Assembly (NCBI GenBank): GCA_010909165.1
Contig: VJWM01000011.1
Location: 1,550,001-1,614,000 of the forward strand
DNA from: Anthoceros angustus
Taxonomy: Eukaryota; Plantae; Anthocerotophyta
Direction of reading: 5' to 3'
DNA: 64,000 nucleotides
Below the pieces are notes generated by a model that saw only the letters and a list, made by a program, of their open reading frames with translations, was not told where the DNA came from and did not search any database. How positions within the stretch are numbered: position 1 is the stretch's first letter; each line of letters opens with the position of its first letter. The position numbers and the translations under genes were made by a program. Positions 2,460 through 55,370 of this stretch are shown here, piece after piece.

Positions 2460-3400
2460 GAGATGCTTCAGATCCTGACTAGAAAACTATGCATCAGTTC
2501 GTCCATGTCTGTCCACCAGCTCTGACCTGATTGCTTCCACGCACGGATTTCAATTTTGTGCCTGCTCCCACATCTGGGCATTGGTTTATGTCTTTGGCAA
2601 CAAAAGATAGGCTGACGCATCTTTCTTGTGGCAGACTCTAGGTCCTAGAGTCTGCCAGATTGCGACATCAGTACAGACACTGACTGCAACCAAGCAAGTG
2701 CCTCATCCAGTCGGCCTGCACGGCCCAGGAGATCAACCATGCACGTGTAGTGCCCCATTTTGGGGGTGATGCCGTAGTCTTTGATCATGACATGAAAGTA
2801 TGTAGTGTCTCCCCTCGCTTACTAGCGCCGTATGACTGTCAGTACGTCTAGCAACGTGTTGCCATCTGGCTATTACCCATCATCTCCCATGCTGAGAAGC
2901 AAGGTACAAACATCTTCACTGACTCCTTTTCACCAAGTCCATGAAACACCCTCTAAGCTGCCTTTAGCATACTCTAAGCAGCCAGACTCGGCATACATGT
3001 TCCATACACAACTGCCTACAAAGACATCAGATCGATGTCCTAGTTTTCTAGTCTGCAAATGAAGCGGCTAACCCTTCTCTAGAGCTGAGCGCCTCACATG
3101 TGCATATGCCTGCAGTAGGCAGACAAATGTCACCTAATCCGGTTCTGCACTGCCATCTTCTTGCATAAAACTAAAGAGATAAAGAGCTTTTCGGCCCATG
3201 CCCTTTGTTTCCAAGTCTGTGAAGGTTTCTTCAGTGTCATCCAAGTTGCCACACTTTGCATATCTGTTTACCAAACAGTTAGCGATGAGAAAATCAGCTG
3301 TATGTCCTCCTTGTAAAATCTGTGTATGAAGCAGCTTCCCCTTATCCAATGCCGAGGCACCCACTCTTGCACCAGCTTGCAGGAGGAACATTAACGTCAT
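2460..3400 (-). pseudogene. Degenerate PLS-class pentatricopeptide repeat (PPR) gene with an E/E+ type C-terminus
   Basis: Translated fragments ALDKGKLLHTQI...IANCLVNRYAKCGNLDD (ORF 3134-3508), [25 protein letters not shown] (about 2700-2750) and WKQSGQSWWTDMDELMHSFLV, interrupted by stops and frameshifts. Confidence 0.75.
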
Positions 3401-3939
3401 GCAATTGGGTACCTTCTCCAAGGCTGGCCACACTTGCAATTGAAGCCTTGGAGAAGGGGATTCAGCTGCAAGTGTGGCCACACTTGCACACGCTAGTAGG
3501 ACGCGCACAAATGTCCCACAGGTCTGGGCACCGCCATGCCATGAAAGGGACTGAGGTAAGCTCTGGTTCGATGAAAGCCACCAGAATTACCAGATACTAT
3601 CTCGTTGCGGTTAAGGATGGATTCAAAGCACAAAGATAACACATGGAGCGCCAGTCTGCCCGAAGCAGAAGAGAAGTGGAGCAGCGGCAGGCTACCGATC
3701 AGAACGTGAAGCGGAAGCTACGAGTTGCGGCCGGGCAAGGGCATTCCGTAGGTAGACTGTCTAACAGATCAATCAGACATTTGAGTTTCTCGAACTCTAA
3801 AAATAAGGACAACAGCACCAGGTCGCTTGTTGAGGCATGATGGTAAGCTTCGGCAGCAACAGGCATTAAGCCAGGCACCCCACAATACGAATAGACCCAC
3901 TAGACTAATTGGGTGCAAAGGTTCCGAAACCTTGACACG

Positions 3940-5471
3940 CTACTTCACAAAGAGATACTTCTGCAACTTCAGGGTTACATACACTAATCCCAACAAGACA
4001 GGTACCTCAATCAACGGGCCAATGGTTGCAGCCAATGCCTCTTGAGAGTCTATGCCAAAACTGCCCACAGCCACGGCTATGGCAAGCTCGAAATTGTTGC
4101 TGGATGCAGTGAACGACTGAGTAACAGCCTCTGCATAAGGGATGCCCAGACGACGACACAGCCACACAGATGAGAAGAAAACGATTGTGAAGTACAGAAG
4201 CATAGGGACCGCCACTCTTGCCACGTCCCCGATGTGGTCGACAATCTGATGAGCTTGGATGGAGAACATCACAAAAATAGTGTACAGCAGGCCAATAAGA
4301 GCCCAGGGCGCTATGAAAGGTATGAACTTGGTGTCGTACCACTTTCTACCCACGGTGTAACGTAGGAGTACCTTGTGATGAATCCAGCAGCCAGAGGAAC
4401 TGAGAAAAAGCAGCACACTTCTGGCGATACCCCAGGCCCCTACATCAATGCCCTTGCCCTGGAAACCACTTTAAGATAGAAGAGAGAAGTGGAGTATACA
4501 ACACCATCTGCATCACAGAATTGATGGCCACCAGTACTGCACACAGCTGTCCATCTCCCTTGGCCAGATCATTCCATATGAGCACCATGGCGATGCATCT
4601 GGCAATCCCCACCAGAATAACCCCTGCCCTGTAGTGCTCAAGATCCGGAAGTGTGGCCCAAGCAAGGCCTGTCATGAGTGCAGGGCCCACAAGCCAATTC
4701 AGAATGAGGCTCAACACCACATTTCGCGCCAGTCCTCCAGTCTTGATTGTTTTATAAAGAACTTCATACCGAACTTTGCAGAGAACTGGATACATCATGA
4801 CCCACAGTCCTACGGCAATAGGCAGAGAAACAGATGCCAGTTTCACAACCTCCAGTCTCTTCTTGATTCCTTTCACATAGTAACCAATAACGAGTGCCAA
4901 TGCCATGTCCACAAGTATCCAGACGAACAGGTAGCGATCTAGCAAAGACAACTTCTTGAACAGGCCTACATCTGCGATAAGTATTCATGCCGAGTAGGTC
5001 AGTCACACTCTAGGAACTCTTCAGAAGACAAAGAAAGCCAATCTTTCACGAACTGAAATGCTGTACCGGCGGAGTCGTCAGCTCCAGGCTTCATCACAGC
5101 CTCACACAAGCTCCTCCATGTGGTAGCAATATTGACACACTCGTCTGCCGATCAAACGCCTGGCAACATGCACTTTAGAGTAATTACCAAAACAGCAGAG
5201 ACACTCTCAATTTCTCACAGCACAAACATGAAACTTGCCACCAGCAAGCCTTCACGAGAGGTGGAGCTCACTTCTCTGCTGGTGCAACAATAAACCCCGG
5301 CGCAATTTTCGTCCGGCTGCGCAGCAACATCGGCTAATGCTGAACCATTTGCCACAAATCTGCAGCGCAAACCCCGTCCGCGCTCTGAATATTGAAGGAG
5401 GTCTGCTGCGCACCAACCGGGCGGCAAAGAACCTCCACTTCATCCCTTTCAAAGGGAACTTCCAGGGCCAT
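3940..5471 (-). CDS. ACR3: ACR3-family arsenite efflux transporter (copy a); 3 exons at 5471-5272, 5159-5067, 4971-3940; about 444 aa once small deletions are corrected
   Basis: Motifs LSLLDRYL, GLWVMMYPVLCKV, NWLVGP.LM, GIARCIAMVLIWN, SNNFELAIAVA and GPLIEVPVL. Phase-compatible GT-AG introns at 5271-5160 and 5066-4972. About seven 1-2 bp deletions (near 5373, 5100-5115, 4365-4480), mostly in base runs, so either assembly error or a young pseudogene. Confidence 0.88.
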
Positions 5472-8400
5472 GACTCGGCACCGGAATGTCACCTAGCGCG
5501 CTCCTCACGCCAAGGACGAATGCCGTCTCCTGATGAAGCACCCTGACAGAGATGCAAATGGCGCCAGCCGCAAAATCGCCACAAGTGAGAAGCAAAATGC
5601 TCCACGCGAATACACAGCACTGCAGCCAAATCGGATCTGCTTTCGGGCTAACAAAACGATAGATGCACTGACTCCAAGGCCTTGACAAACATGAAAGATG
5701 GTACACCACGAACACCAATGTGCTGCTTCCCTCTCCCGCTCATACGATGCATTCCTGCAGAATACACTTCCCAGTTTGTGGCCGACGGACAACCACCTGC
5801 CGTCAGCACAGATCATCAACTCGGTGGAGAGCAACAACGGGTTGAGCTTCCCACCGGCGTCACAGCCAGGGGCCAAGGCCAGCTCGGCAGCAACGATCTT
5901 GGGAGAGCCTGCTAAAGGCGGGCCGGACCCACATTATACTGTACACCGTGGCAGATCGAACACGAGAAGCCGGTTCCTGGGTATATCGGAAGCCGGGAGC
6001 CGGTAGCACCCTCTCTCTACAAGCATGAAACCCCGTACGGCCTCATTTCGGCTCATTTTTTTTGGGTCGCGCGGAGCGGCTGCCTCCGCAAGCTCCGTTT
6101 TACGGTCCGTTTTGGGCGGTGTCCACCGCTTTTGTTTTGCATTTAGAGTTTTGTATTTAGGGTTCTTAGTTAGGGTTTCTGGTATATGTAATTATATTTT
6201 TCTTTTCTGTTGTTTCGTTAATCAGTATTCAAGACAGTTATGTCCTAATTAGGTATATTTTTTATTACTGACATTTTTTTCCCCAACAGTTTTCAGGGCT
6301 CTAACGTTGTTATGGTTTTTGACCGTTTTATGTTGCCCCTACGCATTATTGCTCGATCAATTAGCTTATTTTAGTCATGTTGTAGTATAATGGATGTCTA
6401 ACATTTTTATGTTGTTCCTTACCATAGTACCTCTGTGTTTTTGGTCGCATGGGTAATTTTCAGGTGGGCGGCATGTTCCCTCTTCTATTTTGCATTTTGT
6501 ATTCAGTTGCTTTTTCTAATACTTTTATGGATTTTAACACTGTTATAGCTTCTAATAATTTTATGTTGTTTCTTATCAAAATTACTTTATTTATCATCAT
6601 ATTCTACTGATTTTGTATGTCACAGCAATGACCAGGCGACAGCAACACAAGCCCGGATATTAGACTCGCAACCCTAGACTGAACAGCAATATATTTGGCA
6701 TATACTTTCATTCTCGTAATTAGAAAATAGAACTAATACATGTAATTCAAGTAATTAGTTGAATAGCCTATTTAACTTTCTTGACCTGCACCACCATACA
6801 TGTACAAGACTTAATGGTCATTTGCTGCACTTCTCTTTATAGTAAGATATCAACATCACCTAAATTGTATGTCTCCAACTTACGGTCATTGTTTACGATA
6901 TCCCTCCATGTCCTACATCCCGTTCCATTTCAGCAATCTTGGCTGCCATCCCTGAATTCCATGTCTACAATATAGTAAAATAAAACATGAATAATAATTC
7001 AACAATAATAATAATATAAAGTATAAAATCAAACTTAAGTTAAACTTAATCAGAGCAATTGAGCGAGCGGAAGGGCAAGTATAGTCGGGAGGGCGGGAGG
7101 ACTTGGGGTATAGAAGAAAGCATGAGCCGGTGTCGTAGAGAGAAGGTACACCGGAGGACCCGGTTCACATCCGCCACCGTGTACCGTATAATGATTGTTG
7201 TGGGTCCGGCCCGCCCATAGAAGAGACGCGGGCGGATGTCGATCCAGATGCGCTTGGGGTCCATGTTGGGATGGGAAATGAGATACCTAGTCTACTTTAT
7301 TTGTGCATTTCAAGACCAGGGCTATTTCGGGACAACAGCCGCTGGCAAGCTGCACAGAAGCCTATCCAAGGTTGGAAGCGGCACCAAACCAACCAACCAT
7401 ATGAACTCGGAGTTCGATGTCTTCTCAAACCAAAATTTCATAGCCGAGGAGTTACTGTTACCAGGTCCAGATCCTGGAGCGGCAGATTCATCTGCATCTG
7501 GGAGACCTCGATTCATCCGCATCCGGGACTACCAGGTGGCCCTTGGAGGACGACGAGGGCAGATTCTTCAACCTACGAGTCTCATTGAATGGTTTTTGAC
7601 GACAGGAATTTGTCGGAGGGGGCCAGCTTTTTACCTCCACCGATGAGTTGATTCAAATCCCAGGATTGCAATGGCTCTGGTATGACAATCAATTCTATCA
7701 ACCAAGGAGCTTCTGAGGAAAAAAATTGCATCTGGCTAGGAATGCCAGCCATTGCCAGGATGGAGGAGCGGAAGGTTCATCTGCATCCGGGACGGAATCT
7801 GTTGGTGCTTCAAGGGCCGCTGACTTGGTGTGCGTGCGTTGCAAGCGTCGATCAGGAAGCATCTTGCCTGCTCAGCGCTGCCTCAGCATTGCGCGATCTG
7901 CTGTGGAAGACTCTTCTGTCCAGGAACCAGCGTCGGCCAGCCAGGCTCAAGAATATCCGGATTACTGTACAGCTTCGATAGATAGGGAGCACGTCTGTGC
8001 GCGGATGGGACCCAGCATCTAGCTGCGTTTTGGGCTTTGAATTCGGAGGAGACTGGAGGAAGCACCGGTGGATGAGGTGCAAGATTGGTGACTTGCATTC
8101 GAGAACTGAATGTGGCGTCTGGCTTGGTTGTTGGATTGCGAGAGGCAAGGGGGACTGCATGCTAGCACGGTGCACTGCACATGGACTGGCTCCTCCGAGG
8201 CTCAAATTGCATGTATCTACCAACTCCGGAGATCACACGCCTGGAACGGGTACTGGCTCGAGATTGTGAGAAGTATTCACCGTACGTGGTGCTTAACTGG
8301 GGAGCTTGGAGATGTTGAAAAAGGAGCGCAACAATGTCGAAGCTCTGTCTCTCATACCTTCTTAGCAAAGCGCGCATTTGATAGAAAATAGAGGTATGGG

Positions 8401-8708
8401 TCGAAACCTTGGCTTTGGTGCTGCGTTGAGAAGGAATTGACGAGGAGCTTTTGCCGTGCTCATTTTGATACACGGAGCCCGCGATAGAGATCTTGCCAGG
8501 CGGGTGATGAAACAAGTTTTAAGCATCCAACACAAGCATAACAGTTTTCGAGTCGTTGATTGCTACGAGCGAGAAATGCACCAAGCCTCCCTATCACACA
8601 CACACACAACTACCATAATTAAACAATAGTCGACTGCTAGACTGTCGTCGGAAGCACCATGCCCTTGCTTGCCTGTAAGGTAGAGGGAGCAGATCTGCAA
8701 AGTGGCTG

Positions 8709-9197
8709 TCACACAGATGCGGTTGCAGTTGCGGCTGCGGCTGGCTCAGGAGGTGGTGGATGGACCAATTCTTCCTCTTGGCCCTGGTCTTGGGATTTGG
8801 CATAGCCTTGCTCTTGCACAAGGAGCTGGATGCGGCGCTTGATGTCATCCCTAATGAGGCGGACGGTTTCCACGCTCTGGCCCTTGGGATCCTGCAGCTG
8901 CCAGTCTACCCGCTGCAGCCCGGGTACGTATGGGCAAGCTTCCCCGCATCCCATGGTGACCAGCAGCTTGCTCTTCTCCGCAACCTCCTTGGTGAGCAGC
9001 TGCGGCTTCTTGTCCGACAGATCGATCCCGACCTCCTTCATGGCCTCCAGGACCTCCGGGTGCACGCGGCTGCCGGGCACACTCCCCGCCGACACGGCGT
9101 ACGCCAGCTTGGGATCCGCCAAAGCGTCGAACCAGGCTGCCGCCATCTGCGACCGCCCCGCATTGTGCACGCACGCGAACAGGATACAGTCTGCCAT
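8709..9197 (-). CDS. arsC: Bacterial-type arsenate reductase, LMW-PTP fold, thioredoxin-coupled type; 162 aa, intronless CDS
   Basis: Uninterrupted ORF with P-loop C9-VHNAG-R15-SQMA, resolving pair TMG-C84-GEA-C88-P and DW..QD103-P. An in-frame TGA two codons upstream fixes the start. Low-complexity tail EEELVHPPPPEPAAATATASV. Confidence 0.9.
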   Translation of the reverse strand: MADCILFACVHNAGRSQMAAAWFDALADPKLAYAVSAGSVPGSRVHPEVLEAMKEVGIDLSDKKPQLLTKEVAEKSKLLVTMGCGEACPYVPGLQRVDWQLQDPKGQSVETVRLIRDDIKRRIQLLVQEQGYAKSQDQGQEEELVHPPPPEPAAAATATASV

Positions 9198-9542
9198 GCC
9201 TCAATCTTGCGCTGCCTTCCTCACCCTAGAAGCATGCTTCTTGCCAGGAGAAGTAGCCGCAGTCGGCCCGGCCGTGGAACCGTGGAATGCGGAAGGTGGC
9301 TCTCTCCGATTCTAGAATATCCGGGTTGGCCCTTGAGATGTGAGCAAGTTGCTCCTGCGAAAAGCGCCTTCCAGACACACTGGACGATAAGCAAAAAAGA
9401 GAGGAAACAGCAATACCGGTAGTATCACCTGGCTTTTAGACTTCCTGCTGTTTTTCTTCAGCAATCAGAACGCGGAGCGAACAGAACACGGGGTAGATAG
9501 CTTGAATTTGATACCTTTCATACTTTCGCACACGCTGTGTCA

Positions 9543-10974
9543 CAAAGAGATGCTTCTGCAACTTCTATGTCACATCCACTAATCCCAAGAAGACAGGTAC
9601 CTCAATCAACGAGCCAATGGTCGCAGCCAATGCCTCTTTAGACTCTATGCCAAAACTGCCCACGACCACGGCTATGGCTATGGCAAGCAGCAAGCTCGAA
9701 ATTGTTGCCGGATGAGTAACAGCTTCTGCATAAGGGATGCCCAGACGTCGACACAGCCACACAGATGAGAAGAAAACGATTGTGAAGTACAGCAGGATAG
9801 GGACCGCCACTCTTGCCACGTCCCCAATGTGGTCGACAATCTGATGAGCTTGGATGGAGAACATCACAAAAATGGTGTAGTAAGCCAATGAGAGCGCAAG
9901 GCGATAGGAAAGGAATGAACTTGGTATCGTACCACTTTCTTCCCATGGTGTAACGTAGGGAGTGCCTTGTGATGATTCCATCAGCCAGAGGAACTCCAGG
10001 AAAACGCAGCACACTTCTGGCAATAGCCCAGGCCCCCACATAAATGCCCTTGCCACTGGAAACCACTTTAAGGTAGAAGAGAGGAAGCGGAGTATAAAAC
10101 AACACCTGCATCACCAGTATTGCACACAGCTGTCCATGTCCCTTGGCCAGATCATTCCATATGAGCACCATGGCGATGCATCTGGCAGTGTCCACCAGAA
10201 GAACCCCTGCTCTGTAGTGCTCAAGATCTGGGATGAGGCTCAACACCACAACCCGAGCAAGGCCTCCAGCCTTGACCCATCTTGTAAAGAGCTTTCTTAC
10301 CGAACTTTGAACAGAACTGGATACATCATGACCCACAGTCCTACGGCAATAGGCGAGATACAGATGCCAGTTTCACAACCTCCAGTTTCTTCTTGATTCC
10401 TTTCACGTAGTAACCAATAACCAGTGCACATGCCATGTCCAAAAATAGCCAGACGAACAGCTTCTTGAACAGCCCTACAGCTGTGAAACAATATTAATGC
10501 CGAGGAAGTCAGTCACTCTCTAACAACTCTTCAGAAGACAAACAAATCCAATCTTCCACAAACTAAAGTGCTATACCTGCGGAATCGTCAGCTACACTCT
10601 TTTTTACAGCCTCGCACACAGGCTCCCCTCCATGTGGTAGCAATATTGACACACTCGTCAGCCGATCAAACCTGGCACAACATACACTGAAAGTAATTAT
10701 CAGAGGGAATCTCAACTTCTCACAGCACAGACAATTAAACTTGGCGCCACCGACAAGACATCGATGAGAGGCCAAGTTCACTTCTGTGCTGGTGCAACAA
10801 TAAAACGCTGACTGAGTCTTCGTCAGGCTGAGCAGCAACAGTCGAACCACTCGCTACAAATCTGCAGCGCAAACCCCCGTCCGCGCTGTGAAAATCGAAG
10901 GAGGTCCGCTGCGCACCAACCGGGCGGCAAAGGACCTCCACTTTGTCCCTTTCAAGCGGAGTTTCCCGGGCCAT
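9543..10974 (-). pseudogene. ACR3: ACR3 paralogue (copy b), decayed; same 3-exon layout (10974-10782, about 10672-10577, 10480-about 9543)
   Basis: Colinear with copy a, including both introns. Deletions of 21 nt (LSLLDRY), 54 nt (LNWLVGPALMTGLAWATL), 15 nt (AINSV) and 13 nt before NNFE, plus frameshifts and a TAG at 9565-9567. Confidence 0.85.
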
Positions 10975-11721
10975 GACTCGGCAACGGAATGTTGCCTAGC
11001 GCGAGCCTCAGGAGTCCGTCACTGCGCCAGGGCCTGCACAGTGCACACATGGTCCGCAAGACACAAGTCCGAGACAAGTCAGAAACACAGGCACGAGCAA
11101 ATTTGAAGGCCATCACCTCATGCACCGAGATGCAAATTCCGCCAGCTGCAACATCATCAGAAGTGAGGAAGAAAATGCACTCTACTTCACAGCACTGCAG
11201 GAAAATCGGATTTGCTGTGGAGCTAATCAAAACGATCGCTGCACTGACTACAGAGCCTTGACGAACAAGTAGCTCACAACGCGCACCAATTTTCAGCTTC
11301 CCTCTCGTGCTCCAATTTTGCGTTTATTAGAAATGATTTAGTGCAACATATCAAAATGTGTTAGAGACTGAATGATGGCTGCGTCCATAGCCACTCTGGA
11401 GATCGAATATGGATGTTGAGACTGAGGAACACTTTGTTTTCCTCTGTCTCATATATGAAGATATTAAGTATATATTTATCAATTTATTTACAACATCTCA
11501 ATCTTTACTAAAGGGTTTTTTCAATTATTTTGATCCTATTATTGTAGGAGTTTGCTTGAAACAAATATGAAAGATGAGGACCACCCAAATTCAACTTCTC
11601 AACTTGCCGGATATTTGATTATGCTTCACAGCACTAGTCTCTAAGCCAAACTCAGAATAGCAGTTAATTTTCACGATAGTTTCCATGTATATCTGTCAAA
11701 TCAGTCCCATGACGGAAATCA

Positions 11722-12390
11722 TCCTTAGTGGACTTAAATAAAATTCTTCTTCTTCTTCTTCCGTTATGAATAGTGCCCTAAAAAATAGGTCATAAAGAGT
11801 GCTCTAAAAATAATAAATTTGTATATGTCGCGCCATAACCGCATAGCTGCTCACTTCTCTCACGAAACAAACCAAGTCTACCATGAACCAAGCTCTATTA
11901 TGCTTTACACTCCATTTACCTATTTCTATTGCATAAAATAAGAGCCGCAAATGGGATTGCTGATGTGCAAAAATCAAAGTATTTCGATTTCATTCACTCG
12001 CACACACACACACTGATTGGGCTCTGCTGCATACGGGATCTGTGTGTCTACACACATCCGCCTATCTCGGCACTTCCTTCGGTAAACATCAGCAATCCAC
12101 CTCCTTCGGATTGCTCCTTCCTTTTATGAGCCATCCTCCTCCATGCCATAAATGTCTTTGCTATCTTGAGGAGATGTGCGCCATGACCGAGGCGCCGCCT
12201 TTGCGTTAATGCTCTTGTCTTCCTCTTGACTTTCTGCCACACGCCATTTATGCACATACGGCTTACACGGGCCTTTCCTTACAATACTCGTACTATGCAG
12301 CTACCATACGATTGCTATACGGTTATGCTTACCAACATGCACATCCCCTAAAAGAAGAAGAAGAAGAATTTTATTTGAGTCCACTAAGGA
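11722..12390. repeat. 39-bp inverted repeat pair (11722-11760 and 12352-12390) ending in AATAAAA-(TTC)n
   Basis: TCCTTAGTGGACTYAAATAAAATTCTTCTTCTTCTTCTT and its reverse complement, one mismatch. Confidence 0.8.
12001..12350. repeat. Dispersed repeat of about 350 bp, copy 2
   Basis: Direct match to 1-355. Confidence 0.85.
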
Positions 12391-15045: not shown

Positions 15046-15719
15046 CTTGACATGATTAGCCTTGTGTGTCGGATCCTTGACACCCACATCCTTCCGTGTT
15101 AGACAATATGAATGCACAGCCTTGAGCCCTAGCGTAGGTGGTGGGTGATGCGGCCGTGTTAGATGCTTTGTCTACATGTCATCTACATGCTCGGTTTGCG
15201 TGCCCCGCCTTGAGCCCTACCACACATTTCAAAGGGTTTCCATGGTTTCGCATCCATCGCGATTAATGTGTTTGCCCTTGCACAATTGTGTACACGATGG
15301 GATCCGTGTTTTTATTTGCGACCTTATGTTGACTGACACCGATTGTACAAAAGTATCGCCTTGGCAAGCTCGTTTTGTAAGTTCATCACCGCATGGTGTG
15401 GGTGTTTCCAAGTTGGTAGCATGCTAATTCTTTGCTCGCATTTGTTTTCCCAACTCGCTGATTGTTCAAACCGCTTTAGGCTCTGTTGGGAGGGATACTT
15501 CATGGGGCACTTGGGCATTCCGACATCCGGTGCACATTGGCAAGGGTGCAATCGGGCATATTGACATCCGGTGTTGTTTGGTCATTCGGTCAGACCGCTC
15601 GCAGTCGCCGCGGCTTCCGCTGTGTGGGCATCTTGGCATGGGGTGCGGCTTCATCACCACGGCAATTGGGCATTTTGTCATTCCCTCGCGCTGCGCGCAT
15701 TTCATTCCCTAATGTCCGC

Positions 15720-16200
15720 AGATGGGCATTTCGTCATTCCCTAATATGTACATTTCATTCCATCATGTCGCGCTAAGGCATTTCGTCATTCGATCATGTT
15801 GGCTTGGGCATTTCGTCATTCCATCATGTCGGGATGGGCATTTCGTCATTCGATCATGTCGGCTTGGGCATTTCGTCATTCCATCATGTCGGCATTTGGG
15901 CATTTCGTCATTCGATCATGTTGGCGATTGGGCATTTCGTCATTCCATCATGTCGGGCAGTTGGGCATTTTGTCATTCCATCATGTCGGGCAGTTGGGCA
16001 TTTCGTCATTCCATCATGTCGGGCAGTTGGGCATTTCGTCATTCCATCATGTCGGGCAGTTGGGCATTTCGTCATTCCATCATGTCGAGGCAGTTGGGCA
16101 TTTCTTCATTCCCTAATGCGAGTGATTGGGCATTAGTCATTCCCTCACGTCGGGCAGTTGGGCATTCCGTCATTCCCTCACGTCGGGCAGTTGGCCATTT
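15720..16200. repeat. Tandem array of an approximately 33-bp unit GGGCATTTCGTCATTCCATCATGTCGGGCAGTT
   Basis: More than a dozen units; this array explains the repetitive ORFs at 15722-16417. Confidence 0.9.
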
Positions 16201-39558: not shown

Positions 39559-42500
39559 CGGCTCCGATTGATGGTGACCGAGCCATGCCCGCTACACGCA
39601 CAACCCTAAACAAAAGCATACTGTAGACTCCAACTTTGTACCCAGCGGGCCAAGAACAAGCCGGGCACAACCCTAAAAGCACCGATCACCTCGTGGCAAG
39701 CTCGCGCCTCCACGGATCCGGTTGTAGGGTGTAGACGCAGCTGTGGTGATCCTACAAGGTGATACTATCCCACCACCGTGCACATCCAGCTTCCCCTCAG
39801 TTCCATGAAAGCCCATCAAGAACCAGCTTAGAAATACAATGAACCAAGGACTACCTAAACCCAAATGCCACCTCGCCTACCACTTCCCCGCCACCTCAAT
39901 CCACCACTCCCTTGCCAACCCTTGCCACCCCGTACCAGCAGTCCCCTGCCTCAACCCACCACTCGTCCCGCCACATATACCCACCACATGAGCTAAGTCC
40001 AAAGCTCTCATCAAAGAAAACGTTTATCAAACATGAGATCTAAGTAACTGCGCTCCACATATCAGTTCCAGCTCATGCTACATAGTCCACATCGGCGGAC
40101 CTCAAGATAAGCCTACTCTACCTGTGTGCCGAGATCCTCCTCCTTGTGTGGTGTGGTGACCTCTTCTGACAGCAACCCTAAATCGAAGTGCGGCGAAGTG
40201 CCGCGCGGCAACTCAAAATTTGTTCAGTTACACGCTGATGATCCGTTTGCTCATCTCGTAAATATGCTACAAAATGATTTAGGTAAGGGCCAGAGTGCCC
40301 GCTTACCTGCCTGTTCTCGGGCCCACTTCGTAAACATAGTGTGACAAGTGCCCGCTGAGTGAGACAATGCCCATCCCAAGTAGTCTCTAAATTTAGACTT
40401 TCATTTTGAATATTTTCATGAGTATTTTAATTTTAAATTTTAATCTCATGTAGAAGTGATATATTTGTATATCTTGTAAAAAATCAGACGAGTTTAGAGA
40501 AGAAATAAATTAGTTAAAATTATTAACGTTACATGAGGACAAAATAACAATGTTTCGTCCGTTTCTCACTAATGTGAGCACCAAACCATGCTTACACCCT
40601 GAAGGTAGGACCTGCAGCGCCTCTTGCAATTCAGCATTTGAAGTGCTTAGCATCGGCGCCGGCCATGGCCACTTTCCTGACAAGTTGCGGGTGGCAGGTA
40701 GAGGCTGGCAGTGAATGCGGGGCCCTGTACGACCTCTTCAAGCAACATTGTGATGGGAAGTCTGTGTTCCCACGGTTCCATATGCATGTCCAGTACGCAA
40801 CCCGGCATGGGGGTTGTTTGTCTGAAAGGGAGACGGTTGATTTAGGCACTTCGGGCCGATCGGCGAGGCATGGCGGCAATTCTGGCAGAATCCCATGTTC
40901 TTGAACTGCGTGTTTGAGGCGAGGGACAACCCCGGGGCTGGGACACGCACCACATCAAAAGGGAAGTCCATCTCGGATGAGCAAATGTGTGGTGAGTCGC
41001 GGTGTTTGGAGTGTTCATCATAGCCCGCAGCCTTTCATTCTAACACGCAGCCTCGACTCATGCTCGGTTCTTTGGCTACCTTGTAGTACATGGTCCGGCG
41101 ATCATGCAAGTGTCATGCCCCATGACCGTACACCACGCCCTTGCCCGCGATGGCTGGCGGCGGTGTGGCAAGATGCGCCGGCTCATCGTTCTTGAAGAAG
41201 GCCTTCAAGGCGGACATGAAAGCGCATACCCGGAGGTGATGGGTGTGTTGTCTTTAAAGGCCTCGTGGCAAGTGCGAACCATCAACATGCGGCCATCAAG
41301 GAGGCCGTTGCCCTCATCACTACCGGGGATCCGAGTTTTTCGACATTTTGCACGCTTCGGGGACCGAAATTTAGCATGGAGGTGAGCATGGTGCGTGAGA
41401 GGCTAACCGAGGAGGTCTTGTTTAAAAGTGCTTGCATGTTGGGGGCTTGTCGACGGAGATTGCGGTGCATGTATTTTGACGCTTCTGGGCCAAGGTGATG
41501 CCCATTGTGAACACATATCTTGGAGGTGGTCGCTTTTTTTTCTCCGGTGCTCAAGGATGTACGAGATGACTTCCTGAATCTGGGACGACTTTTGAGGCAT
41601 GCACCCCGAGTCAAGAGCATGTTCGCCATGGCGCGGCGGAGGGTGTCTTTGCGGAAAGGGTCAGTACACCTTCATGCCGCACCTCCGCTGTGTTCTGGGT
41701 GAGGCGCCAATTGTGGTGTTTGAAGTACCATTGATGACGGAGGAGACTCCCCACGGCCATGACGTCGTGGGACATTGCTCCTTCCATTGTATGACTCGAG
41801 GACACTATGTGCGGCGAGTCGCCATTTCTCACAACACGGTTTATGGCATGGCCTAGCGTAGATTGCCGAGCCATTGTAGAGGAAGGCCAAGTCGTGTGTG
41901 ATGTGTGATGTTCTTGGGATTGTGGACTACATGTTTCGAAATGCCATCCCATTGGTAATTATTGATCTGCAAGTTGCGTGTTCATTATGCGGTGTTAGCT
42001 TGTGAGTATGTGGGGGAATAGCTTGTGCACACAAAAGGAGGCGAATTAATGCACCCGCTGCGTCGAGGACAACGCGTGGCGTGCGGAATCTTAAGAAAGT
42101 GCGGAGGAGCAATGACGCCGCGCCTGCGGGTGCCTCCGAAAATCGCGATGCCGCCTATTCAATTTCAAGCGGAAGGAAGAGTCCATGCTGGCGCGTTGAG
42201 GAGACTCCATTTCTCGCGATCGAGTTGTGGAAATCAGCCATGGCGGGTCATCAGAGAGCACCGTTTCCGGCCGAGGGCGCGACAGCGAAACACATGGGTG
42301 AAGGGACATCGGAACTAATCGCGGTCGGTCGGTGTGCAAGACTGTGAGGCGGGCGTGAGCAGTGGGGTTGGGGCGGGCAAGGCTAAGGAAAGGAGATGCA
42401 TTCATTGAGCATGGAACGAAGAAGGCGGCGGTGGCTCGTCGCGGTTGTTTTGGCGGATGGGGCCACACGAGGCGGGCGGGATCCGTTGGGGCGGAGCGAG

Positions 42501-43849
42501 CGAGGGACGCAGGCGTGGGCGGCGATGCGGCGGGCGCAGCGTTCCGGTGACACGGTAGAGGCGTCGACATCATCAGCCGTCCATGCCCGGTGTTCGCGCT
42601 TGCGGGCGACATTCGCCGTCTGCCCGCGGATGGGGCCAGGGACATGGTGGCGCATGTCTTGACGGTTGGAGACAAGGGCTGCGGGCTTGGACTCGTGGGT
42701 GGTTTTAGTGCGTGCAGGATGGAACCATGCGAAGTGGAGGATGCCCGGATGAGAGGTGGGCAATGCAGTTGTGACGGCGGGGGTTGCGGCATGCACCGAG
42801 GGTATCTATTTCAGCACATGGACACATTTGAAGTGCGGAGGCTGCGAAGAACAAGGAGCCTCCCGGCTAGGATTGGTGGGTTGGGGCGGGTCCAACGCGA
42901 AGGAGAAGGGGATGCGGGCGATGGGTTGGCCGGCGTTGAGAAGAGTCCGGCAATGGTGGTGTGGTGAGGCGGATGCAGCGAAGTCATCTTCGCTTGGTGA
43001 CGATGGTCGACGGTGTGCGTGGGTGGTTCGATCGCGGCCACGTGTACCATCGCGCGGTGGTGGACACGATGCACCTGCAGCTGCGGGGCCATGCATCCTC
43101 GCGAAAAGCATGCGTGCGACACGCAAAGGCGATGGGTGGCTGGGTGGAGTGGGGATGTGACACTACGGTGCATCGTGTATGGACCGGCCGACAGTTCCGC
43201 TTAGATGTGTGGACGGCGGGGACTACATGGGCATGTTGGCGATGGCATGCGGTCGGATCGGCGGGCGATGACAATTGCCAGCGGGAGGCGAGGGGTGCGC
43301 CGGTCGGCAGCAATGTCGGTTGCCGTTCTCCTTGACAACCAGTGCGTATGTGTTGTCGTGGACAAGGCGTGAGCTTCTTTGCGAAGAGGAGGCGGCTCAC
43401 GTCATCCTCGAGCACTGCCTTTATGGGGGAGCCGAAATTCCAGTGTAGGGGCTGCTTGCTACAAAGAGTCTCGTGTTTCTCTTCAACGCGTGCACACCGG
43501 TGGCCTATCAGTAGAGTTGTGGGGTGGAAAGGCGTAGGAATAATGGTGGGGTATTTCTTTGAAACATTGTATCGTGGATTTGTGGAAAGAAGCAAGGCGG
43601 GGGCATGAATGTCCTTAGGCATGAAATTTGGAAGCAACCAGCGTTCCGAAGTGAATAAGGCACATGCGTATGGGGCCATAGCCAATGAAAAGGAGACAGT
43701 GGCAGGAGGATAGAGCCGAGAGATGGCGGAACACCTGGGGAATCATGGGGGACGGCCCGTGAGATCAGTAGGGAGGTTCGGGAGCAGCGGGGCGATGGAC
43801 GGATTGATGGCGAGGCGAGGGGCGGATGAGGCAGCAGCGGTGTGCAGGC

Positions 43850-44480
43850 GAAGGAGGAGATGAGGGTGATATGTGGGGTGGATGCGGGGGGCATGAGCAG
43901 AGGGGATGGGGTTGGATGGAGGGCGGGCGGGCGGGGGCAGCGGAGGCGGGATGAGGAGGCGGGCGCGGGCGGGGCGAGGCGGGCGGGGAGAGGAGGCGGA
44001 GGAGCGCGGGCGGGCGCGGAGTGGGAGGGGCAAGGCAGGCGGGCGGCGCAGGCGAAGGAGGAAGGCGGAGGCGGGGCGTGGCGCCATCCGGGCGAGTGGC
44101 GGGCGGGGTGAGGCCGTGGGCGCGCGGAGGGAGGAAGGAGGGGCGGGGTGTGCGGGAGGGAGGGGCAGGCGGAGGCGGGGCCGAGGCCCGAGGCGGGTCT
44201 GGCAGGCGGAGGGGCAGCACAGGCAATGAGGAGGATGGCGGAGGGGCGGAGGAGGCTTGGTGCGGCCGTATGGCAGTGGCGGCGGAGGGGAGATGGGCGT
44301 CGCAGCAAGGGAGATGGAGGCCGAGGCGCGGAAGGACGGAGGGGGGATCCGATGGAGGAAGGAGGAAGTGTCGAGGTGGAGGTGGGAGCCATCCCCGACT
44401 CTGAGCAGGCGGCGGGGAGAGGAAGGCAGTCGGCCGGCTGCCCTTGAGTGGAGACTTTGAGGAACATCGCAGAGGGCGGA
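43850..44480. repeat. Purine-rich (G/A) low-complexity GC-rich tract
   Basis: Dense GG/GGG runs on the plus strand; the overlapping Pro/Gly/Arg-rich ORFs are compositional. Confidence 0.75.
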
Positions 44481-44589
44481 GGAGGGCGGACTGACATTGA
44501 AAGGGCTCGCAGCGAGCCGGGATGCACCAGGAGGTGGTGGCCGCACGGTGCCTGTGATGGAGAGGTCGCCACGCCGGTCCGCCGAGAAC

Positions 44590-45290
44590 AATAGAAGACG
44601 CCCGCAACCTCATCCTACAAAATGTGACCATCACGCGTGGTGTGAACTGGGAGTGAGGATTGTGCAAGATCGCGGGCCGGCCGCCGTGCCTGAGGTGTGA
44701 CGGCAGATTGCGAGCCATGCACCGGAGGCCATGGAATGAGGTCGCAGCGATTCGGGCGGTGCAATACACGAATGTAATAATCGATGTACATGTGGCATGG
44801 ATCGTGGAGTGCGGAACTTGGAGCACATGGTGGTCGCCGAGTTAGCCGCAAAGACAACGCATGAAGCTAACGGGTGCGAGTGTGCGGCCGCAGCAGACGC
44901 ACAAGATGTACATGTTCCACTTCGTGGTGCACGCGTATAGATGGGGCAACGACTACATAACGTGGGCGGGCCGGAGGACAACAAGCGGCAGAACAATCTA
45001 CAAGGCGACGCTGAGGCGGTGCATTACGAGCCATGCGGTAGGAGGCCATGGAATGAGGTCGCAGCTGCGCGTTGGTGCAATACGAAACAGGCTCGTGTAC
45101 ATGTGGCACATGTGAGTGTCGGAACTTGGAGCACATGGTGGTCGCTGGTCGATAACCCGACTGCGCCTGACAAGCTAAGGTCACAGTGTTGTCTTTCGGT
45201 ACGACAAGATGTACATGTTCCACTTGAGGTGCCGCGGCCATAGATGGGAGCAGCGCTACATAGTGGCGGTCTTTGGAGGACAACAAGCGG
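44590..45290. repeat. Diverged tandem duplication with a period of about 310 bp
   Basis: GGAGGCCATGGAATGAGGTCGCAGC near 44725 and 45040; GATGTACATGTTCCACTT near 44907 and 45208. Confidence 0.7.
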
Positions 45291-47087
45291 GCGGGAACAA
45301 TCTACAAAGGCGTGCGGAGGTTTGGGCACCCGCAGGATTCGGTCCGATTTGTTGCGGAGCACAACCTAGTTGAGAGGACTGAACCGAGGCGGAGGCGAGA
45401 GAGGCAGGAACTTCATTCGGGGCCATCGGTGCACAATCGGGTAAGGTGGATCTGGATGTCATGTGAGATTTGCCGCAATGTGCTTCCACGAATGCGGCTG
45501 CGGAACCGGAGCCCGTGCCGGAACATAGCAGGCGTGGTTGGTGGGTGGAGTGCGTGGTGTGAGGCGGCGCGCCGAGCTTCCGAAGGAGAAGTGGGGCTTC
45601 CTACAAGAGGTACATGTTGGAGCTGGCGGTAGTGAGTTGGATACCACGAACCCTTGGCACATACATTCCTTGCGACATTCATGCCACCATAAGTGAGGCC
45701 AGGTGGCGACTTTCGTTGAGTGTGGAACTTGCAGGGGTGAAGAAAATGAGGTTGGGAGATGATGACATAGCTGGCCCGTCCGCGGAGGCCTTCGAGGAGG
45801 AGCGTACGCCGCCCGGTAGGGCCGCCCGCTTATGGGGTAGGACGAGGAGGGGCGATTATTAACGACTACTATGTCCTTTGACTACCAGATCGCGCGCGTT
45901 GCAACGCCGCAGCTTCCAGGCACCGCCTCCGGGCATCGCGGTCGATGTGGGTGGGTGAACGCCGCCCCAAGACCGGGTCTCACGTGAACACAATGGGCTT
46001 GCTAATGACGACATAAAGGTTTTGTGTCAGGACATGCAAGAGTGGCCGAGGACATGGGCATCTGACCCGAGGTGCTTGGAAGTGTACAAATTACACCTCC
46101 TGACATGTTGTGGAGCTCACGGACTTGACTCTTTGGGGGTTAGGAACAAGTAGGGTTTTGCTTTTTCAGAGGTCCACAGATAGTAAAATAAGGTGGAAAG
46201 GGCGGCTGCTACCTGATGGTGCTCCCACTGGCCCGAGTGGGTAACTAATTCGCACTATTATGCCAGCCCGAGCTACGGATCGCGTAATCGGAGTAACGGA
46301 TAAGTCCCACTCCCACTCCGGGTGCCAAACAGATAAGTACGCCAGTGAAAGTAATTTAGAAGTTGAGCTGCGTGGAGGGCTGCATCGAAGCGGGCGCACG
46401 TGGGCTGACCGGGCCCCGGTGGAGGTTTGGACATGCAGCAGTGCCAGACTGAGCCAAGGGGTCAAGAGCAGCAGTGTGTATTCACGCCCGCTGGACCTGT
46501 GGGCGGGGTGCCGTAAGGCTGCAGGTACGCTGCGGCGTAAGGTCGAGGTTATGCGAGACCTCCTGCAGCTACGAACAAAAAGAGGTACCCTCCCGCTCAG
46601 CTGTTATTTCCAAACCAAGGGCCGACGAGGAGGGTCGTTTCTGGCTGTGCGACACTCGAGATTCACCCGCAGCCTCAAGGCCCGGCAACCCGGCACCTCC
46701 TCCTGGGCGCTTATCTCTTTGAACGCTCGTACCCGCTGCTCACCGCTAGTTGGAGCAACGAGTCAAGAGGGCGAAGGCGCATGCTGCCAGTCTCTGCACC
46801 AATGGAAGCTCTGACTAAAGGAGGAAGAAGGCGATGGGACCTGTGGGCACGTTGGAGGTATGGGAGCGCAACTTTGCACGGTAGGCAGCAACACCTCACG
46901 CCTGCCATTGTCCATCCCGCCCATCCTGTGCCCACTACCAGCCTTGATGTCCGCCGCACCCGGGACTTGCTCCGAATCGCTGGGTGTGAGGTCCTTAGCC
47001 GGACCGTGAGATGCCAGCCTCCCTCAGCCGGACTTTTTGGGGCCTCACCGGTGACGGCCGTGGAAGAGACACTTTGAACCTGCCACC

Positions 47088-48300
47088 ATGGACGGAGGCT
47101 CTGGGGTCTCGCGGGATGCCGAGAAGACCTAGGAAGTAGAAGCCACCAGGAGGCGCATGGTGCTCCTCCAGGAGCAGTTGGAGGCGGCCCAGGAGGCGAG
47201 GAGGAAGGCAGAAGCTCTCGGCCGCATCGAAGAAGGGAAACGCCGGGAGGCCGAAAGGGAAGTCTGGTCCATTCGACAGGACCGACTAAATCTCACCGGG
47301 TGAGCACCGGGCAGTGCATGAGGCCCAAGCGCTGGTCAAGACCTCCGGGCAGCGGAGAGGGGTAGCGCACAGAGGCGAGGAGGCCCAGAAGCAGAAGGCT
47401 CGCGACTGGCCGAGGCGGCACCGACACCAAGTCGGCAAGCCTGTGAAGGCGGCGAGGAGGCGGAAGCCCGCTAAGATCGACCGCGATCACTATCGGGCGT
47501 GATCGAACCGTGGAGGGAGACGGCAGGATAGCCGCGGGCTAACTCAAGACGGGAGGAGGCGAGGAGGAGGCGGGCCAGCCATGCCGAGGAGAAGGAAGCC
47601 CGCGAAAGGAGATGGAGGATCTCCGACTCCGCGCGAGGTGGAGCAAATGGCGAGATGGAAGACCGAAGAGAGACTCGAGTCAGCCCAAGTTACCATTGAG
47701 AGGAATGGTACTGCGGCGTGATCACGGATCACGAACGAGATAGAGCGGCTCTAGCCTCATATGGACGGAGGAGGTACATGGAACAACAGCAGGACGCCGC
47801 CGAAATGGAGAAGGACTGGCGAAGCACCTGAAGAGTTGCCCGACCGTCTGAGAGGGAGATGGCATGGAGCTAAAGCCGTGGATGAACGGGACGAGAGCAC
47901 CGGACGCAAAAGAAGCCGGTCCAGCGACAAGGCGGCGGGAGCGCCATGGCAAGCCGGCAAAGCAGAGGGAAACGACGGAGCCGGAGCAAAGTGAGCAACA
48001 AGGGCGCGTTGCGGAGAGGTGACCGAGGCGCCTTGTGGCTCGCGAGATTCGCCCGGCCCAAATGACGAACTGGCAGGAGATGGTCCAAAGAAGTTGACAA
48101 AGACGCCCCCGAGCACCAATGGCGAAGGAGTATCGTGCTCCGGGCACATGTGGAAGAGGCAATCCAAAGAATTGACTCGGATTTTGCCTACCATACCGAG
48201 CTCCTTAAGGCATTGAAGCCTCGCCCGCTACAAATCGGACGGACCCCTAAGGCTCGAAGGGGATGAAGGGCATGGGGACAAGACGGACCCTAGTGGCCCC
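47088..48300 (+). mobile_element. Possible 5-prime gag remnant of a Ty3/Gypsy-like element
   Basis: Coiled-coil-like LQEQLEAAQEARRKAE followed by an LKPRPY..G-like motif; broken by stops; no pol seen. Confidence 0.3.
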
Positions 48301-54924: not shown

Positions 54925-55370
54925 GGCTGCCCTGCGATTCTTAGAAGAACGGAATGCAATTTCAAGAATGCCATGCCGCAGCAATCCCTCCTGCTTTCGC
55001 ACATTGCTGACTTCCGGGTGAAGTGTGGACTTGTCAAGTCGCAAGCAGATGCTGCAGCTTTTTTCTCAAAGAATCTCCAACTTTTCTGAATACAGTGCCG
55101 TCGAAACATGCGACAGCAATGGGACTGCCAGAGGGACGCAGACGTCGGGCTGCCCTGCGATTCTTAGAAGAACGGAATGCAATTTCAAGAATGCCATGCC
55201 GCAGCAATCCCTCCTGCTTTCGCACATTGCTGACTTCCGGGTGAAGTGTGGACTTGTCAAGTCGCAAGCAGATGCTGCAGCTTTTTTCTCAAAGAATCTC
55301 CAACTTTTCTGAATACAGTGCCGTCGAAACATGCGACAGCAATGGGACTGCCAGAGGGACGCAGACGTCG
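54925..55370. repeat. Apparently exact 223-bp tandem duplication immediately upstream of the P450 A start codon
   Basis: 54925-55147 matches 55148-55370. Confidence 0.9.

Follow-up and report, generated by a model that had tools for sequence, protein, structure and literature searches.

A plant-type ACR3 gene beside a bacterial-type arsC gene in the hornwort Anthoceros angustus

Results

Gene order and assembly quality

The window analysed here is a stretch of 64,000 nucleotides from Anthoceros angustus. Its minus strand carries, at 3940-11312 and by rising coordinate, ACR3, arsC and an ACR3 pseudogene, i.e. pseudogene, arsC and ACR3 in the direction of transcription. A first-pass annotation of this DNA had placed three arsenic-resistance genes here, all on this strand and in this order, which Pfam, NCBIfam and a duplication alignment confirm. 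They correspond to the annotated genes AANG005600 (ACR3), AANG005601 (arsC) and AANG005602 (pseudogene) on scaffold17, whose coordinates minus 1,550,000 equal the window coordinates exactly in all three cases. The three genes appear, undiscussed, in the supplementary tandem-gene table for A. angustus. Outside the window, 20 kb upstream, lies AANG005598, whose annotation lists an SBF as well as an LMWPc domain; it represents a second unit of the same genome.

The A. angustus assembly is of the Nanopore/wtdbg type and its source material had required heavy decontamination (PMC7027989). Between the window and short-read DNA contigs (X1) there are about 7 gap letters per kb and 0 substitutions. 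This gap-only mismatch points to residual long-read indel error in the window, which leaves fine details of the pseudogene and the C-terminal tail of ArsC uncertain.

ACR3 and its decayed duplicate

ACR3 consists of three exons. Exon 3 (3940-4971, stop codon 3940-3942) encodes the whole 10-TM core, as defined by NCBIfam acr3 and the restored reading frame. By rising coordinate it is followed by intron 2 (4972-5066, 95 nt, GT..AG on the minus strand), which RNA contig X2 record 9 has spliced out, by exon 2 (5067-5158), which lies within the spliced RNA contig and encodes part of the N-terminal extension, and by intron 1 (5159-5270, 112 nt), whose joint is found in RNA contigs of both X2 and X7. 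Exon 1 (5271-5882) holds the 5' UTR and the start of the coding sequence (ATG at 5471), the RNA contig extending to 5882. The spliced contig measures 1831 nt at a depth of 232, and RNA of a third species (organism C) contains a joint nearly identical to that of intron 2 (skipping 99).

NCBIfam acr3 (TIGR00832) matches both halves of this copy with 187 and 169 bits. The raw window splits it through four small deletions into two open reading frames (ORFs) in different frames. However, the letters missing at 4364, 4401, 4456 and 4486 are present in the X2 RNA contig and in the X1 DNA contigs from the same sample; since RNA and short-read DNA restore all four indels, the frameshifts are Nanopore assembly errors. 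With the four letters restored, exon 3 is a single uninterrupted ORF of 344 codons containing GIARCIAMV and NNFELA. The gene, which the first-pass annotation had listed without a pseudogene mark, is therefore intact once corrected, though not as the raw window reads; it is spliced and expressed.

The exon 3 product is 86-89% identical to hornwort ACR3, and in the ACR3 tree a hornwort clade (SH-aLRT 99) lies inside a land-plant clade (SH-aLRT 99). Translation of exon 1 gives a Cys-rich N-terminal tail with ...VLCRPVG... and GLRCRF. The latter contains LRCRF, the arsenic-responsive retention motif published for MpACR3 (PMC13674352). To judge from the hornwort clade and the LRCRF-bearing N-terminal exons, ACR3 is a plant-type gene of vertical inheritance. 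The earlier alternative of a whole module retained from a bacterial transfer is not supported, since only arsC is bacterial-like.

The second ACR3 copy (9530-11312, minus strand) retains remnants of the N-terminal exons and forms with the first a 1.8-kb duplicated block (3935-5741 vs 9530-11312). The copies show about 80% identity in a gapped 1.6-kb BLAST alignment and 86% mean column identity in MAFFT. Copy 2 has suffered deletions of 21, 54 and 15 bp and several frameshifts, its NNFELA region is scrambled, it stops early, and its RNA depth is 0 over the stretch examined (9500-9899). By these lesions and the zero RNA it is a pseudogene. It lies upstream of arsC, with 333 bp between its 3' end and the arsC start codon.

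The arsC gene and its product

The arsC coding sequence (8709-9197), on the same strand as ACR3 and without introns, encodes 162 amino acids classed as an LMW-PTP-type arsenate reductase by ORF, Pfam (LMWPc, E=1e-16) and PDB match. The best PDB match is the arsenate reductase 3T38 (E=2.6e-28). Cys9 lies in CVHNAGRS, and Cys84 and Cys88 lie in GCGEACP, where 3T38 has CVHNAGRS and GCGDVCP; the protein thus carries all three cysteines of the thioredoxin-coupled class. A Pro/Ala-rich C-terminal tail of 27 amino acids is unmatched in the aligned bacterial homologues. No targeting peptide is detectable in ArsC, hence it is probably cytosolic. The closest relatives are bacterial (60-71% identity, mostly Myxococcota and Acidobacteriota), in agreement with the bacterial character first assigned to the gene. 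GC3 (0.75-0.82) resembles the value for a host P450 exon.

Fold and P-loop are common to LMW-PTP and ArsC, and three NCBIfam ArsC equivalog models all remained under their cut-off (70-78 bits vs 158-215). The protein might accordingly serve in planta as a phosphotyrosine phosphatase or redox protein that stands beside ACR3 incidentally. We regard this as unlikely, as every one of the best PDB matches is an arsenate reductase, the Cys triad is that of the thioredoxin-coupled class, the nearest source-named bacterial homologues carry the name ArsC, and in at least five eukaryote genomes and contigs the gene is again found next to ACR3.

Two separate transcripts

The arsC transcript (8577-9483; X2 RNA records 11-13) is unspliced and about 0.9 kb long, of which about 286 nt are 5' UTR; it has a depth of about 92 and no splice joint. 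RNA depth falls to 0 on both sides of it, over 9500-9899 and over 5900-8100. The latter stretch belongs to the 2.7-kb spacer that separates arsC from ACR3 downstream of it (5883-8576), which contains essentially no RNA although DNA contigs cover it, and no spacer ORF tested matched Pfam. ACR3 and arsC are thus transcribed as two separate mRNAs in one RNA sample. Because no RNA lies between them the locus is not an operon, and the 'operon-like' character initially ascribed to it is not supported in the sense of co-transcription, ACR3 moreover having spliceosomal introns.

The arsC RNA contig (821 nt) differs at 7 sites from both the window and the DNA contig. It may stem from another individual or from a paralogous unit, so that expression of arsC is found while expression of exactly the window copy is not strictly proven. 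Five of the six coding differences are synonymous. A second species (organism B) has an arsC transcript about 94% identical with mostly synonymous differences (7 of the 10 shown). This synonymous bias, within the species and against the organism B ortholog, places arsC under purifying selection. RNA of organism C contains ACR3 and no arsC at 90% likeness or more.

An intronless, GC-rich arsC in a Nanopore/wtdbg assembly with residual indel errors, from material that needed heavy decontamination (PMC7027989), could in principle be bacterial contamination stitched into a mis-joined cluster, a hazard that the first-pass annotation had named. This is highly improbable. An independent contig of short-read DNA (X1 record 8) runs across 8479-9778 with 0 substitutions, covering arsC and both flanks and joining it to 248 nt of the ACR3 pseudogene. 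Moreover, a discrete arsC transcript with UTRs occurs in a library prepared with an mRNA-Seq kit (PMC7027989), the related transcript is found in organism B, the ArsC tail is eukaryote-style, and arsC GC3 is host-like. The three genes form a real neighbourhood in the nuclear genome of the hornwort.

ACR3-ArsC linkage in other green lineages

Linkage in related genomes, proposed as a check on the cluster, was found repeatedly. The liverwort Riccia sorocarpa has two loci with adjacent and divergent ACR3 and ArsC genes, R1sor_006536/006537 and, by gene numbers, R1sor_001618/19/21. The same arrangement occurs in the liverwort Calypogeia fissa and in a Chlamydomonas eustigma-like contig (L007); a liverwort-like contig (L001) and Coccomyxa, the latter at 10 kb, also show linkage. 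Linkage is not universal, since neither the moss Ceratodon nor the lycophyte Diphasiastrum carries an ArsC within 10 kb of ACR3. Published green-algal ACR3/ArsB-ArsC(-ArsH) neighbourhoods include the streptophyte Klebsormidium (PMC7826186). Across the green lineage, ACR3-ArsC adjacency therefore appears repeatedly: in chlorophytes, in Klebsormidium, in liverworts and in the hornwort A. angustus. We found no literature description of the neighbourhood in land plants, the liverwort pairs included. The cluster, at first thought undescribed in plants, is thus known in algae and apparently not yet described for land plants.

Discussion

The locus is, with good probability, a plant-type ACR3 and a bacterial-type arsC acting as a reduce-and-export pair from separate mRNAs, accompanied by a decayed ACR3 duplicate. 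Such a linked pair had been suggested from the start, and transcription of both genes in one RNA sample and recurrence of the adjacency in liverworts and algae speak for it. ArsC would reduce As(V) to As(III) via a Cys9 to Cys84 to Cys88 disulfide cascade and would be regenerated by thioredoxin; the As(III) would then leave through ACR3. The pair would resemble a bacterial arsC-acr3 module with eukaryotic, monocistronic expression. Reduction of arsenate by this ArsC, its coupling to thioredoxin and an induction by arsenic are predictions; adjacency of genes in a eukaryote is by itself no proof of co-regulation. The local layout is best read as an ancestral ACR3->arsC tandem unit in which ACR3 was later duplicated and its upstream copy decayed; the remains of that copy would now form the sequence immediately preceding the site where arsC transcription begins.

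Bacterial ars operons and actinobacterial ACR3-ArsC fusion proteins likewise set reduction and export side by side, using the same LMW-PTP subfamily. Unlike bacterial ars operons, the hornwort locus has no polycistronic mRNA and no ArsR repressor, and its ACR3 is interrupted by spliceosomal introns and encodes a eukaryotic trafficking domain. The best solved homologue of the hornwort protein, Corynebacterium glutamicum ArsC1' (3T38), is a thioredoxin-coupled three-cysteine LMW-PTP arsenate reductase with an identical P-loop (CVHNAGRS) and a conserved GCGxxCP cysteine pair, the match covering only the core of about 120 residues of the 213-residue chain. Hornwort ArsC, whose activity is predicted, has no N-terminal extension and has its own C-terminal tail. 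The yeast reductase Acr2 belongs to the CDC25/rhodanese type and not to the LMW-PTP ArsC enzymes. Yeast does show that an arsenate reductase gene can adjoin ACR3 in a eukaryote, its ACR1, ACR2 and ACR3 genes being contiguous (Bobrowicz et al. 1997, as cited in PMC7826186).

Within plants, Marchantia polymorpha MpACR3 (PMC13674352) and other plant ACR3 (bioRxiv 10.64898/2025.12.14.694196) resemble the hornwort protein in having a lengthened N-terminal tail that contains Cys, and LRCRF, a motif for retention and arsenic sensing; both papers treat ACR3 alone and mention no neighbouring reductase gene. The green-algal ArsB/ACR3-ArsH-ArsC neighbourhoods of Chromochloris zofingiensis, Coccomyxa subellipsoidea and Klebsormidium nitens (Foflonker & Blaby-Haas, Mol Biol Evol; PMC7826186) are likewise nuclear, combine an ACR3-family exporter with a bacterial-like LMW-PTP ArsC, and contain duplicated units; their ArsC proteins are reported there to be closer to bacterial homologues than to each other. 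Unlike them, the hornwort locus belongs to a land plant and has a same-strand tandem, a decayed ACR3 duplicate and land-plant LRCRF N-terminal exons; ArsH had no match among the window ORFs scanned. The pairs of Riccia sorocarpa and Calypogeia fissa comprise the same two families 1.5-2 kb apart, with an ArsC intronless or nearly so and an ACR3 of two small exons and one core exon, as in the hornwort. However, liverwort pairs are head-to-head, whereas the hornwort pair is tandem, and liverwort ArsC groups with algal ArsC in maximum-likelihood trees, whereas hornwort ArsC does not.

The phylogenies give a clear answer for ACR3, which is vertical, and a divided one for ArsC. A bacterial arsC gained once, early in the green lineage, may have become linked to ACR3 and passed vertically to algae, liverworts and hornworts, the hornworts rearranging the divergent pair into a tandem and mosses and vascular plants losing it. 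Linkage from chlorophytes and Klebsormidium to liverworts and A. angustus fits such a history, as does the single clade of algal and liverwort ArsC (UFBoot 94 / SH-aLRT 81). Forcing all green-lineage ArsC, hornwort included, into one clade costs 8.6 lnL (p-AU 0.33), and ArsC is short (about 135 aligned columns). Yet every maximum-likelihood tree separates hornwort ArsC from the algal and liverwort clade and groups it with sequences from bacteria and metagenomes, Acidobacteriota MAGs among them (UFBoot 98 / SH-aLRT 90 in one tree, SH-aLRT 87-90 in others). It is 69% identical to the best bacterial proteins and only 56-59% to liverwort ArsC, a hornwort plus liverwort clade is rejected under a mixture model (p-AU 0.02), and the orientations are unlike. 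We consider the single early gain credible, if somewhat short of an even chance.

Nearly even are the chances that a later transfer from a soil bacterium brought arsC, inserted or retained directly downstream of ACR3, and we lean slightly towards such a separate bacterial transfer rather than ancient inheritance. The isolated position of hornwort ArsC among plant ArsC, its higher identity to bacteria, the tandem orientation, the intronless gene and the clearly vertical ACR3 favour it. On the other hand, AU tests disagree (p = 0.02, 0.11, 0.33), two separate insertions beside one gene would be a strong coincidence unless linkage is strongly selected, and arsC has host-like GC3 and about 6% nucleotide divergence between species, which makes it not very recent. 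If the separate, later transfer is true, the reductase-exporter neighbourhood was assembled convergently in hornworts and in the line of algae and liverworts.

Layout of the arsenic gene locus

The first-pass annotation had recognised three arsenic-resistance genes on one strand, and profile matches together with alignment bear this out: an ACR3 gene, an arsC gene and a decayed second ACR3 copy lie on the minus strand at 3940-11312. All three appear in the supplementary tandem-gene table of the A. angustus genome paper (PMC7027989), as AANG005600 (ACR3, scaffold17 1553940-1555094), AANG005601 (LMWPc, scaffold17 1558519-1559197) and AANG005602 (ACR3, scaffold17 1559565-1560974), the scaffold positions being those of the window plus exactly 1,550,000. 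A duplicated block of 1.8 kb comprises the two ACR3-like copies (3935-5741 and 9530-11312), which share 82-96% identity in gap-free segments and approximately 80% over a gapped 1.6-kb BLAST alignment.

Outside the window, the region scaffold17:1516751-1538545 holds two further annotated members of the group 20-37 kb upstream, 12-34 kb from the window: AANG005596 (ACR3) and AANG005598, a single gene model with both SBF (ACR3) and LMWPc domains (PMC7027989). The latter may represent a second ACR3-arsC unit, a fusion gene or read-through transcription. With these two models upstream, the window represents one end of an array of about 44 kb comprising four ACR3 and two ArsC copies.

A direct repeat of 350 bp (90% identity; 2-349 and 11995-12352, about 12 kb apart) flanks the whole ACR3-arsC-pseudogene block, and its left copy may run past the beginning of the window. 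The repeat may be a dispersed one, or it may be a trace of the segmental duplications behind the array. Immediately downstream of ACR3, a PPR-repeat fragment at 3134-3508 on the minus strand (weak match, PPR E=3e-4) is probably a gene remnant.

Elsewhere in the window, two related P450 N-terminal exons lie in tandem on the minus strand at 54295-55044 (Pfam p450 E=1e-8) and 57386-57832; each carries a long antisense ORF, and nearby repeated ORFs (53160-54329, 56822-57679) match no family. The stretch 42000-48000 has a GC content of 0.60-0.63, a strong positive GC skew and long Pro/Ala/Ser-rich minus-strand ORFs. A short-unit tandem array at 15660-16200 is open in several frames, with ORFs of repetitive sequence (GHFVIPSC / WAFRHSIMS), and a minus-strand ORF with a CCHC zinc knuckle (50937-51494, E=1e-3) is probably a retrotransposon gag remnant.

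The downstream ACR3 is an intact gene of plant type

In the raw window the downstream ACR3 is distributed over two ORFs in different frames, with deletions of 1, 1, 2 and 1 bp. These four frameshifts relative to the upstream copy and to Riccia suggest a pseudogene. That reading is ruled out by reads from the same sample: an RNA contig of 1831 nt (depth 232) carries added letters at 4364, 4401, 4456 and 4486, which are all four deletion sites, and further ones at 5102 and 5599, and short-read DNA contigs show identical added letters in this gene. Across 3900-9899 the window differs from the DNA contigs by approximately 7 gap letters per kb and by no substitution. The A. angustus assembly was made by Nanopore/wtdbg/Pilon (PMC7027989), and such a rate of indels without substitutions is the residual error typical of this kind of assembly. 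With the four letters restored, exon 3 becomes a single ORF of 344 codons containing the motifs GIARCIAMV and NNFELA.

The RNA contig defines three exons on the minus strand, at 5882-5271 (with the ATG at 5471), 5158-5067 and 4971-3940, and its splice joints define two GT..AG introns of 112 and 95 nt. In RNA of a third species the first joint (112 nt) is matched and the second nearly so (99 nt), and the Riccia ACR3 gene shows the same three-exon layout.

The Cys-rich tail encoded by exon 1 contains GLRCRF and is the extended N-terminal tail of plant ACR3; LRCRF is described for Marchantia MpACR3 as a retention motif that responds to arsenic (PMC13674352). TIGR00832 matches both halves of the core (187.1 and 169.4 bits), and two conserved residues are kept in the read-corrected exon 3, Cys in GIARCIAMV and Glu in NNFELA. 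The corrected core shares 86-89% identity with three proteins, among them one from the hornwort Nothoceros aenigmaticus. In the ACR3 tree the window protein joins Nothoceros in a hornwort clade (SH-aLRT 99) nested within a land-plant clade (SH-aLRT 99) and a streptophyte clade (96). The hornwort ACR3 is of plant type and vertically inherited.

The upstream ACR3 copy is a pseudogene

In the copy at 9530-11312, segments of 21, 54 and 15 bp are missing, the reading frame is shifted at several points and meets an early stop, and the NNFELA region is rearranged. No RNA covers 9500-9899, the portion examined. Since multi-codon deletions are not explicable as assembly error and RNA is absent from this portion, the upstream copy stays a pseudogene.

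arsC encodes a thioredoxin-type arsenate reductase candidate

Between the two ACR3 copies, arsC is an intact ORF of 162 codons at 8709-9197 on the minus strand. Its product contains a LMW-PTP domain (Pfam PF01451, LMWPc, E=1e-16, residues 5-125), and the 15 PDB matches with E<=1e-5 are arsenate reductases except for one, whose entry title names a low-molecular-weight phosphatase family protein. Among solved structures, Corynebacterium glutamicum ArsC1' (3T38, E=2.6e-28) is the closest; this enzyme works by a cascade of three cysteines that is coupled to thioredoxin. The P-loop CX5R(S/T) is present as C9-V-H-N-A-G-R15-S16 (CVHNAGRS) and aligns to an identical P-loop in 3T38. The cysteine pair C84 and C88 in GCGEACP aligns with GCGDVCP of 3T38; from the literature on Cg_ArsC1' we take these two residues to be the cascade cysteines.

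Scores stay below the NCBIfam equivalog cut-offs of TIGR02689 (78.5 vs 157.6), PRK13530 (76.2 vs 215) and TIGR02691 (70.4 vs 174.3), and the hornwort protein is assigned to another ArsC subfamily, the Myxococcota/Actinomycetota type. The N-terminus begins at the catalytic loop, without a transit peptide. At the C-terminus, a Pro/Ala-rich tail of 27 residues lies outside the bacterial alignments (query coverage 77-88%). With a GC3 of 0.75-0.82, arsC resembles a host P450 exon (GC3 0.75) in this respect.

arsC is transcribed separately from ACR3 and is conserved between species

Expression of arsC is documented by a discrete, unspliced RNA contig of 821 nt (8660-9483, depth 92), with short contigs reaching 8577. 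RNA depth is zero on both sides of arsC, over 5900-8100 and 9500-9899, so the arsC signal is not carry-over of genomic DNA. The operon-like character proposed in the first-pass annotation does not extend to co-transcription: the two RNA contigs are separate, the gaps between and beyond them lack RNA, and ACR3 is spliced. Because the arsC transcript starts within about 50 bp of the pseudogene 3' end, its promoter must lie within the decayed ACR3 copy.

At seven sites the arsC RNA contig departs from the window sequence; six of these differences are coding, and all but one of the six are synonymous. The contig may derive from another individual or from the paralogous unit. RNA of a second species contains an arsC of approximately 94% identity, with 7 of 10 listed differences synonymous. 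The synonymous excess in both comparisons indicates purifying selection on arsC.

A short-read DNA contig bridges arsC and the neighbouring ACR3 pseudogene. Together with the discrete transcript and with the second-species ortholog, it rules out contamination as well as a mis-join.

ACR3 and ArsC are neighbours in other green genomes

The two best relatives of the hornwort ACR3, in Riccia sorocarpa (chromosome CM100796; PMC11923412) and on a liverwort-like Logan contig of 4.6 kb, both adjoin an LMWPc gene, head-to-head and with about 2 kb between the genes. In Riccia the pair occupies 7579-8007 and 10001-11648 of the locus excerpt from CM100796.1, and a second locus (R1sor_001618/001619 with R1sor_001621) lies on another chromosome. 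The leafy liverwort Calypogeia fissa has a divergent pair 1.5 kb apart (6230-8475 and 10001-10423 of its locus excerpt). This conserved liverwort pair is annotated merely as hypothetical or unnamed proteins. Another Logan contig (SRR24390608), whose ACR3 groups with the chlorophyte Chlamydomonas eustigma, carries ArsC and ACR3 head-to-head, 165 bp apart (1-294 and 459-1853), and about 10 kb separates the two genes in the chlorophyte Coccomyxa. For Ceratodon, a moss, and Diphasiastrum, a lycophyte, neither annotation nor TBLASTN placed an ArsC within 10 kb of ACR3. The linkage noticed in the hornwort is found in related liverwort and algal genomes.

Neighbourhoods of ACR3/ArsB, ArsH and ArsC have been described in Chromochloris, Coccomyxa and Klebsormidium (PMC7826186). 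The hornwort locus fits this eukaryotic, green-lineage ARS gene neighbourhood, with a nuclear exporter gene and ArsC within a few kb of each other, recurring across species. ArsH is the third member of the algal neighbourhoods (PMC7826186); in the subset of window ORFs scanned, an FMN_red match was not obtained.

Origin of arsC

Among 5.8 billion sequences the nearest proteins are bacterial ArsC with 60-71% identity; an exact-sequence look-up found no record identical to the window ArsC. A scan of prokaryote genomes recovered relatives mostly in Myxococcota, also in Acidobacteriota and Planctomycetota and in a few Pseudomonadota. Scan and tree together pointed to no specific bacterial donor, Acidobacteriota MAGs being nearest in the tree.

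The liverwort, Coccomyxa and Chlamydomonas-like ArsC sequences form one clade (UFBoot 94 / SH-aLRT 81), and the hornwort protein falls in a separate bacterial/metagenomic clade (98/90) whose named members are Acidobacteriota MAGs. Its identity is up to 69-71% to bacterial proteins versus 56-59% to liverwort ArsC. Forcing hornwort and liverworts into one clade cost 34.8 lnL under a mixture model (p-AU 0.02) and 28.9 lnL under LG+G4 (p-AU 0.11), and forcing all green-lineage ArsC into one clade cost 8.6 lnL under LG+G4 (p-AU 0.33), all on about 135 alignable columns. The last result would accommodate a single ancient acquisition common to the green lineage; on the whole we lean slightly towards a separate acquisition of the hornwort arsC. 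We give a little under an even chance to a fuller scenario, in which arsC came from a soil bacterium independently of the arsC of algae and liverworts, and both ended up, or were kept by selection, beside a vertically inherited ACR3: a convergent assembly with a reductase family so far unreported from embryophytes.

The suggestion that the linked module was retained from a bacterial transfer is not supported for the module as a whole, arsC alone being bacterial-like by its nearest matches and ACR3 plant-type and vertical by its tree. The ACR3 phylogeny, the introns and the exons encoding LRCRF rule out that a bacterial acr3-arsC operon was transferred in its entirety.

Discussion

In this study, we show two neighbouring, separately transcribed genes in A. 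angustus that contain the full set of catalytic motifs and are kept between species. ArsC would reduce arsenate to arsenite in the cytosol with thioredoxin, and the arsenite would then be exported by ACR3, whose trafficking is probably under arsenic control via the LRCRF tail. The most simple reading of the local architecture would be an ACR3-arsC tandem unit whose ACR3 underwent duplication, followed by decay of the upstream copy; the remnant of that copy presumably now lies immediately upstream of the arsC transcript start.

To our knowledge, work on arsenate reductases of land plants has concerned enzymes of the rhodanese/CDC25 type (ACR2, HAC1/ATQ1). Searches of the bryophyte, liverwort and hornwort literature on ACR3 and arsenate reductase yielded neither a LMW-PTP ArsC in land plants nor a linkage to ACR3. 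Recent papers on plant ACR3 (PMC13674352; bioRxiv 10.64898/2025.12.14.694196) mention no neighbouring reductase and treat ACR3 as a stand-alone gene, the horizontal-transfer section of the A. angustus genome paper (PMC7027989) names no arsenic gene, and the bryophyte pangenome paper leaves ACR3 and arsC genes unmentioned. The initial impression of a cluster undescribed in plants holds for land plants, but the neighbourhood type is already published in green algae (PMC7826186), and the hornwort locus is a land-plant member of it. Two points are new: the pair occurs in two bryophyte lineages, in differing orientations, and the hornwort reductase may have originated independently.

Indel errors in the published hornwort assembly produce false frameshifts, and pseudogene calls genome-wide need read support. 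As to arsenic biology, bryophytes possess an expressed bacterial-type LMW-PTP ArsC physically paired with ACR3, which extends the algal ARS neighbourhood into embryophytes. For work on arsenate tolerance and for engineering, ACR3 and arsC offer a two-gene module that is simple and open to testing, and the locus provides a clean case for weighing inheritance against repeated selection for linkage after horizontal transfer in the functional clustering of plant genes.
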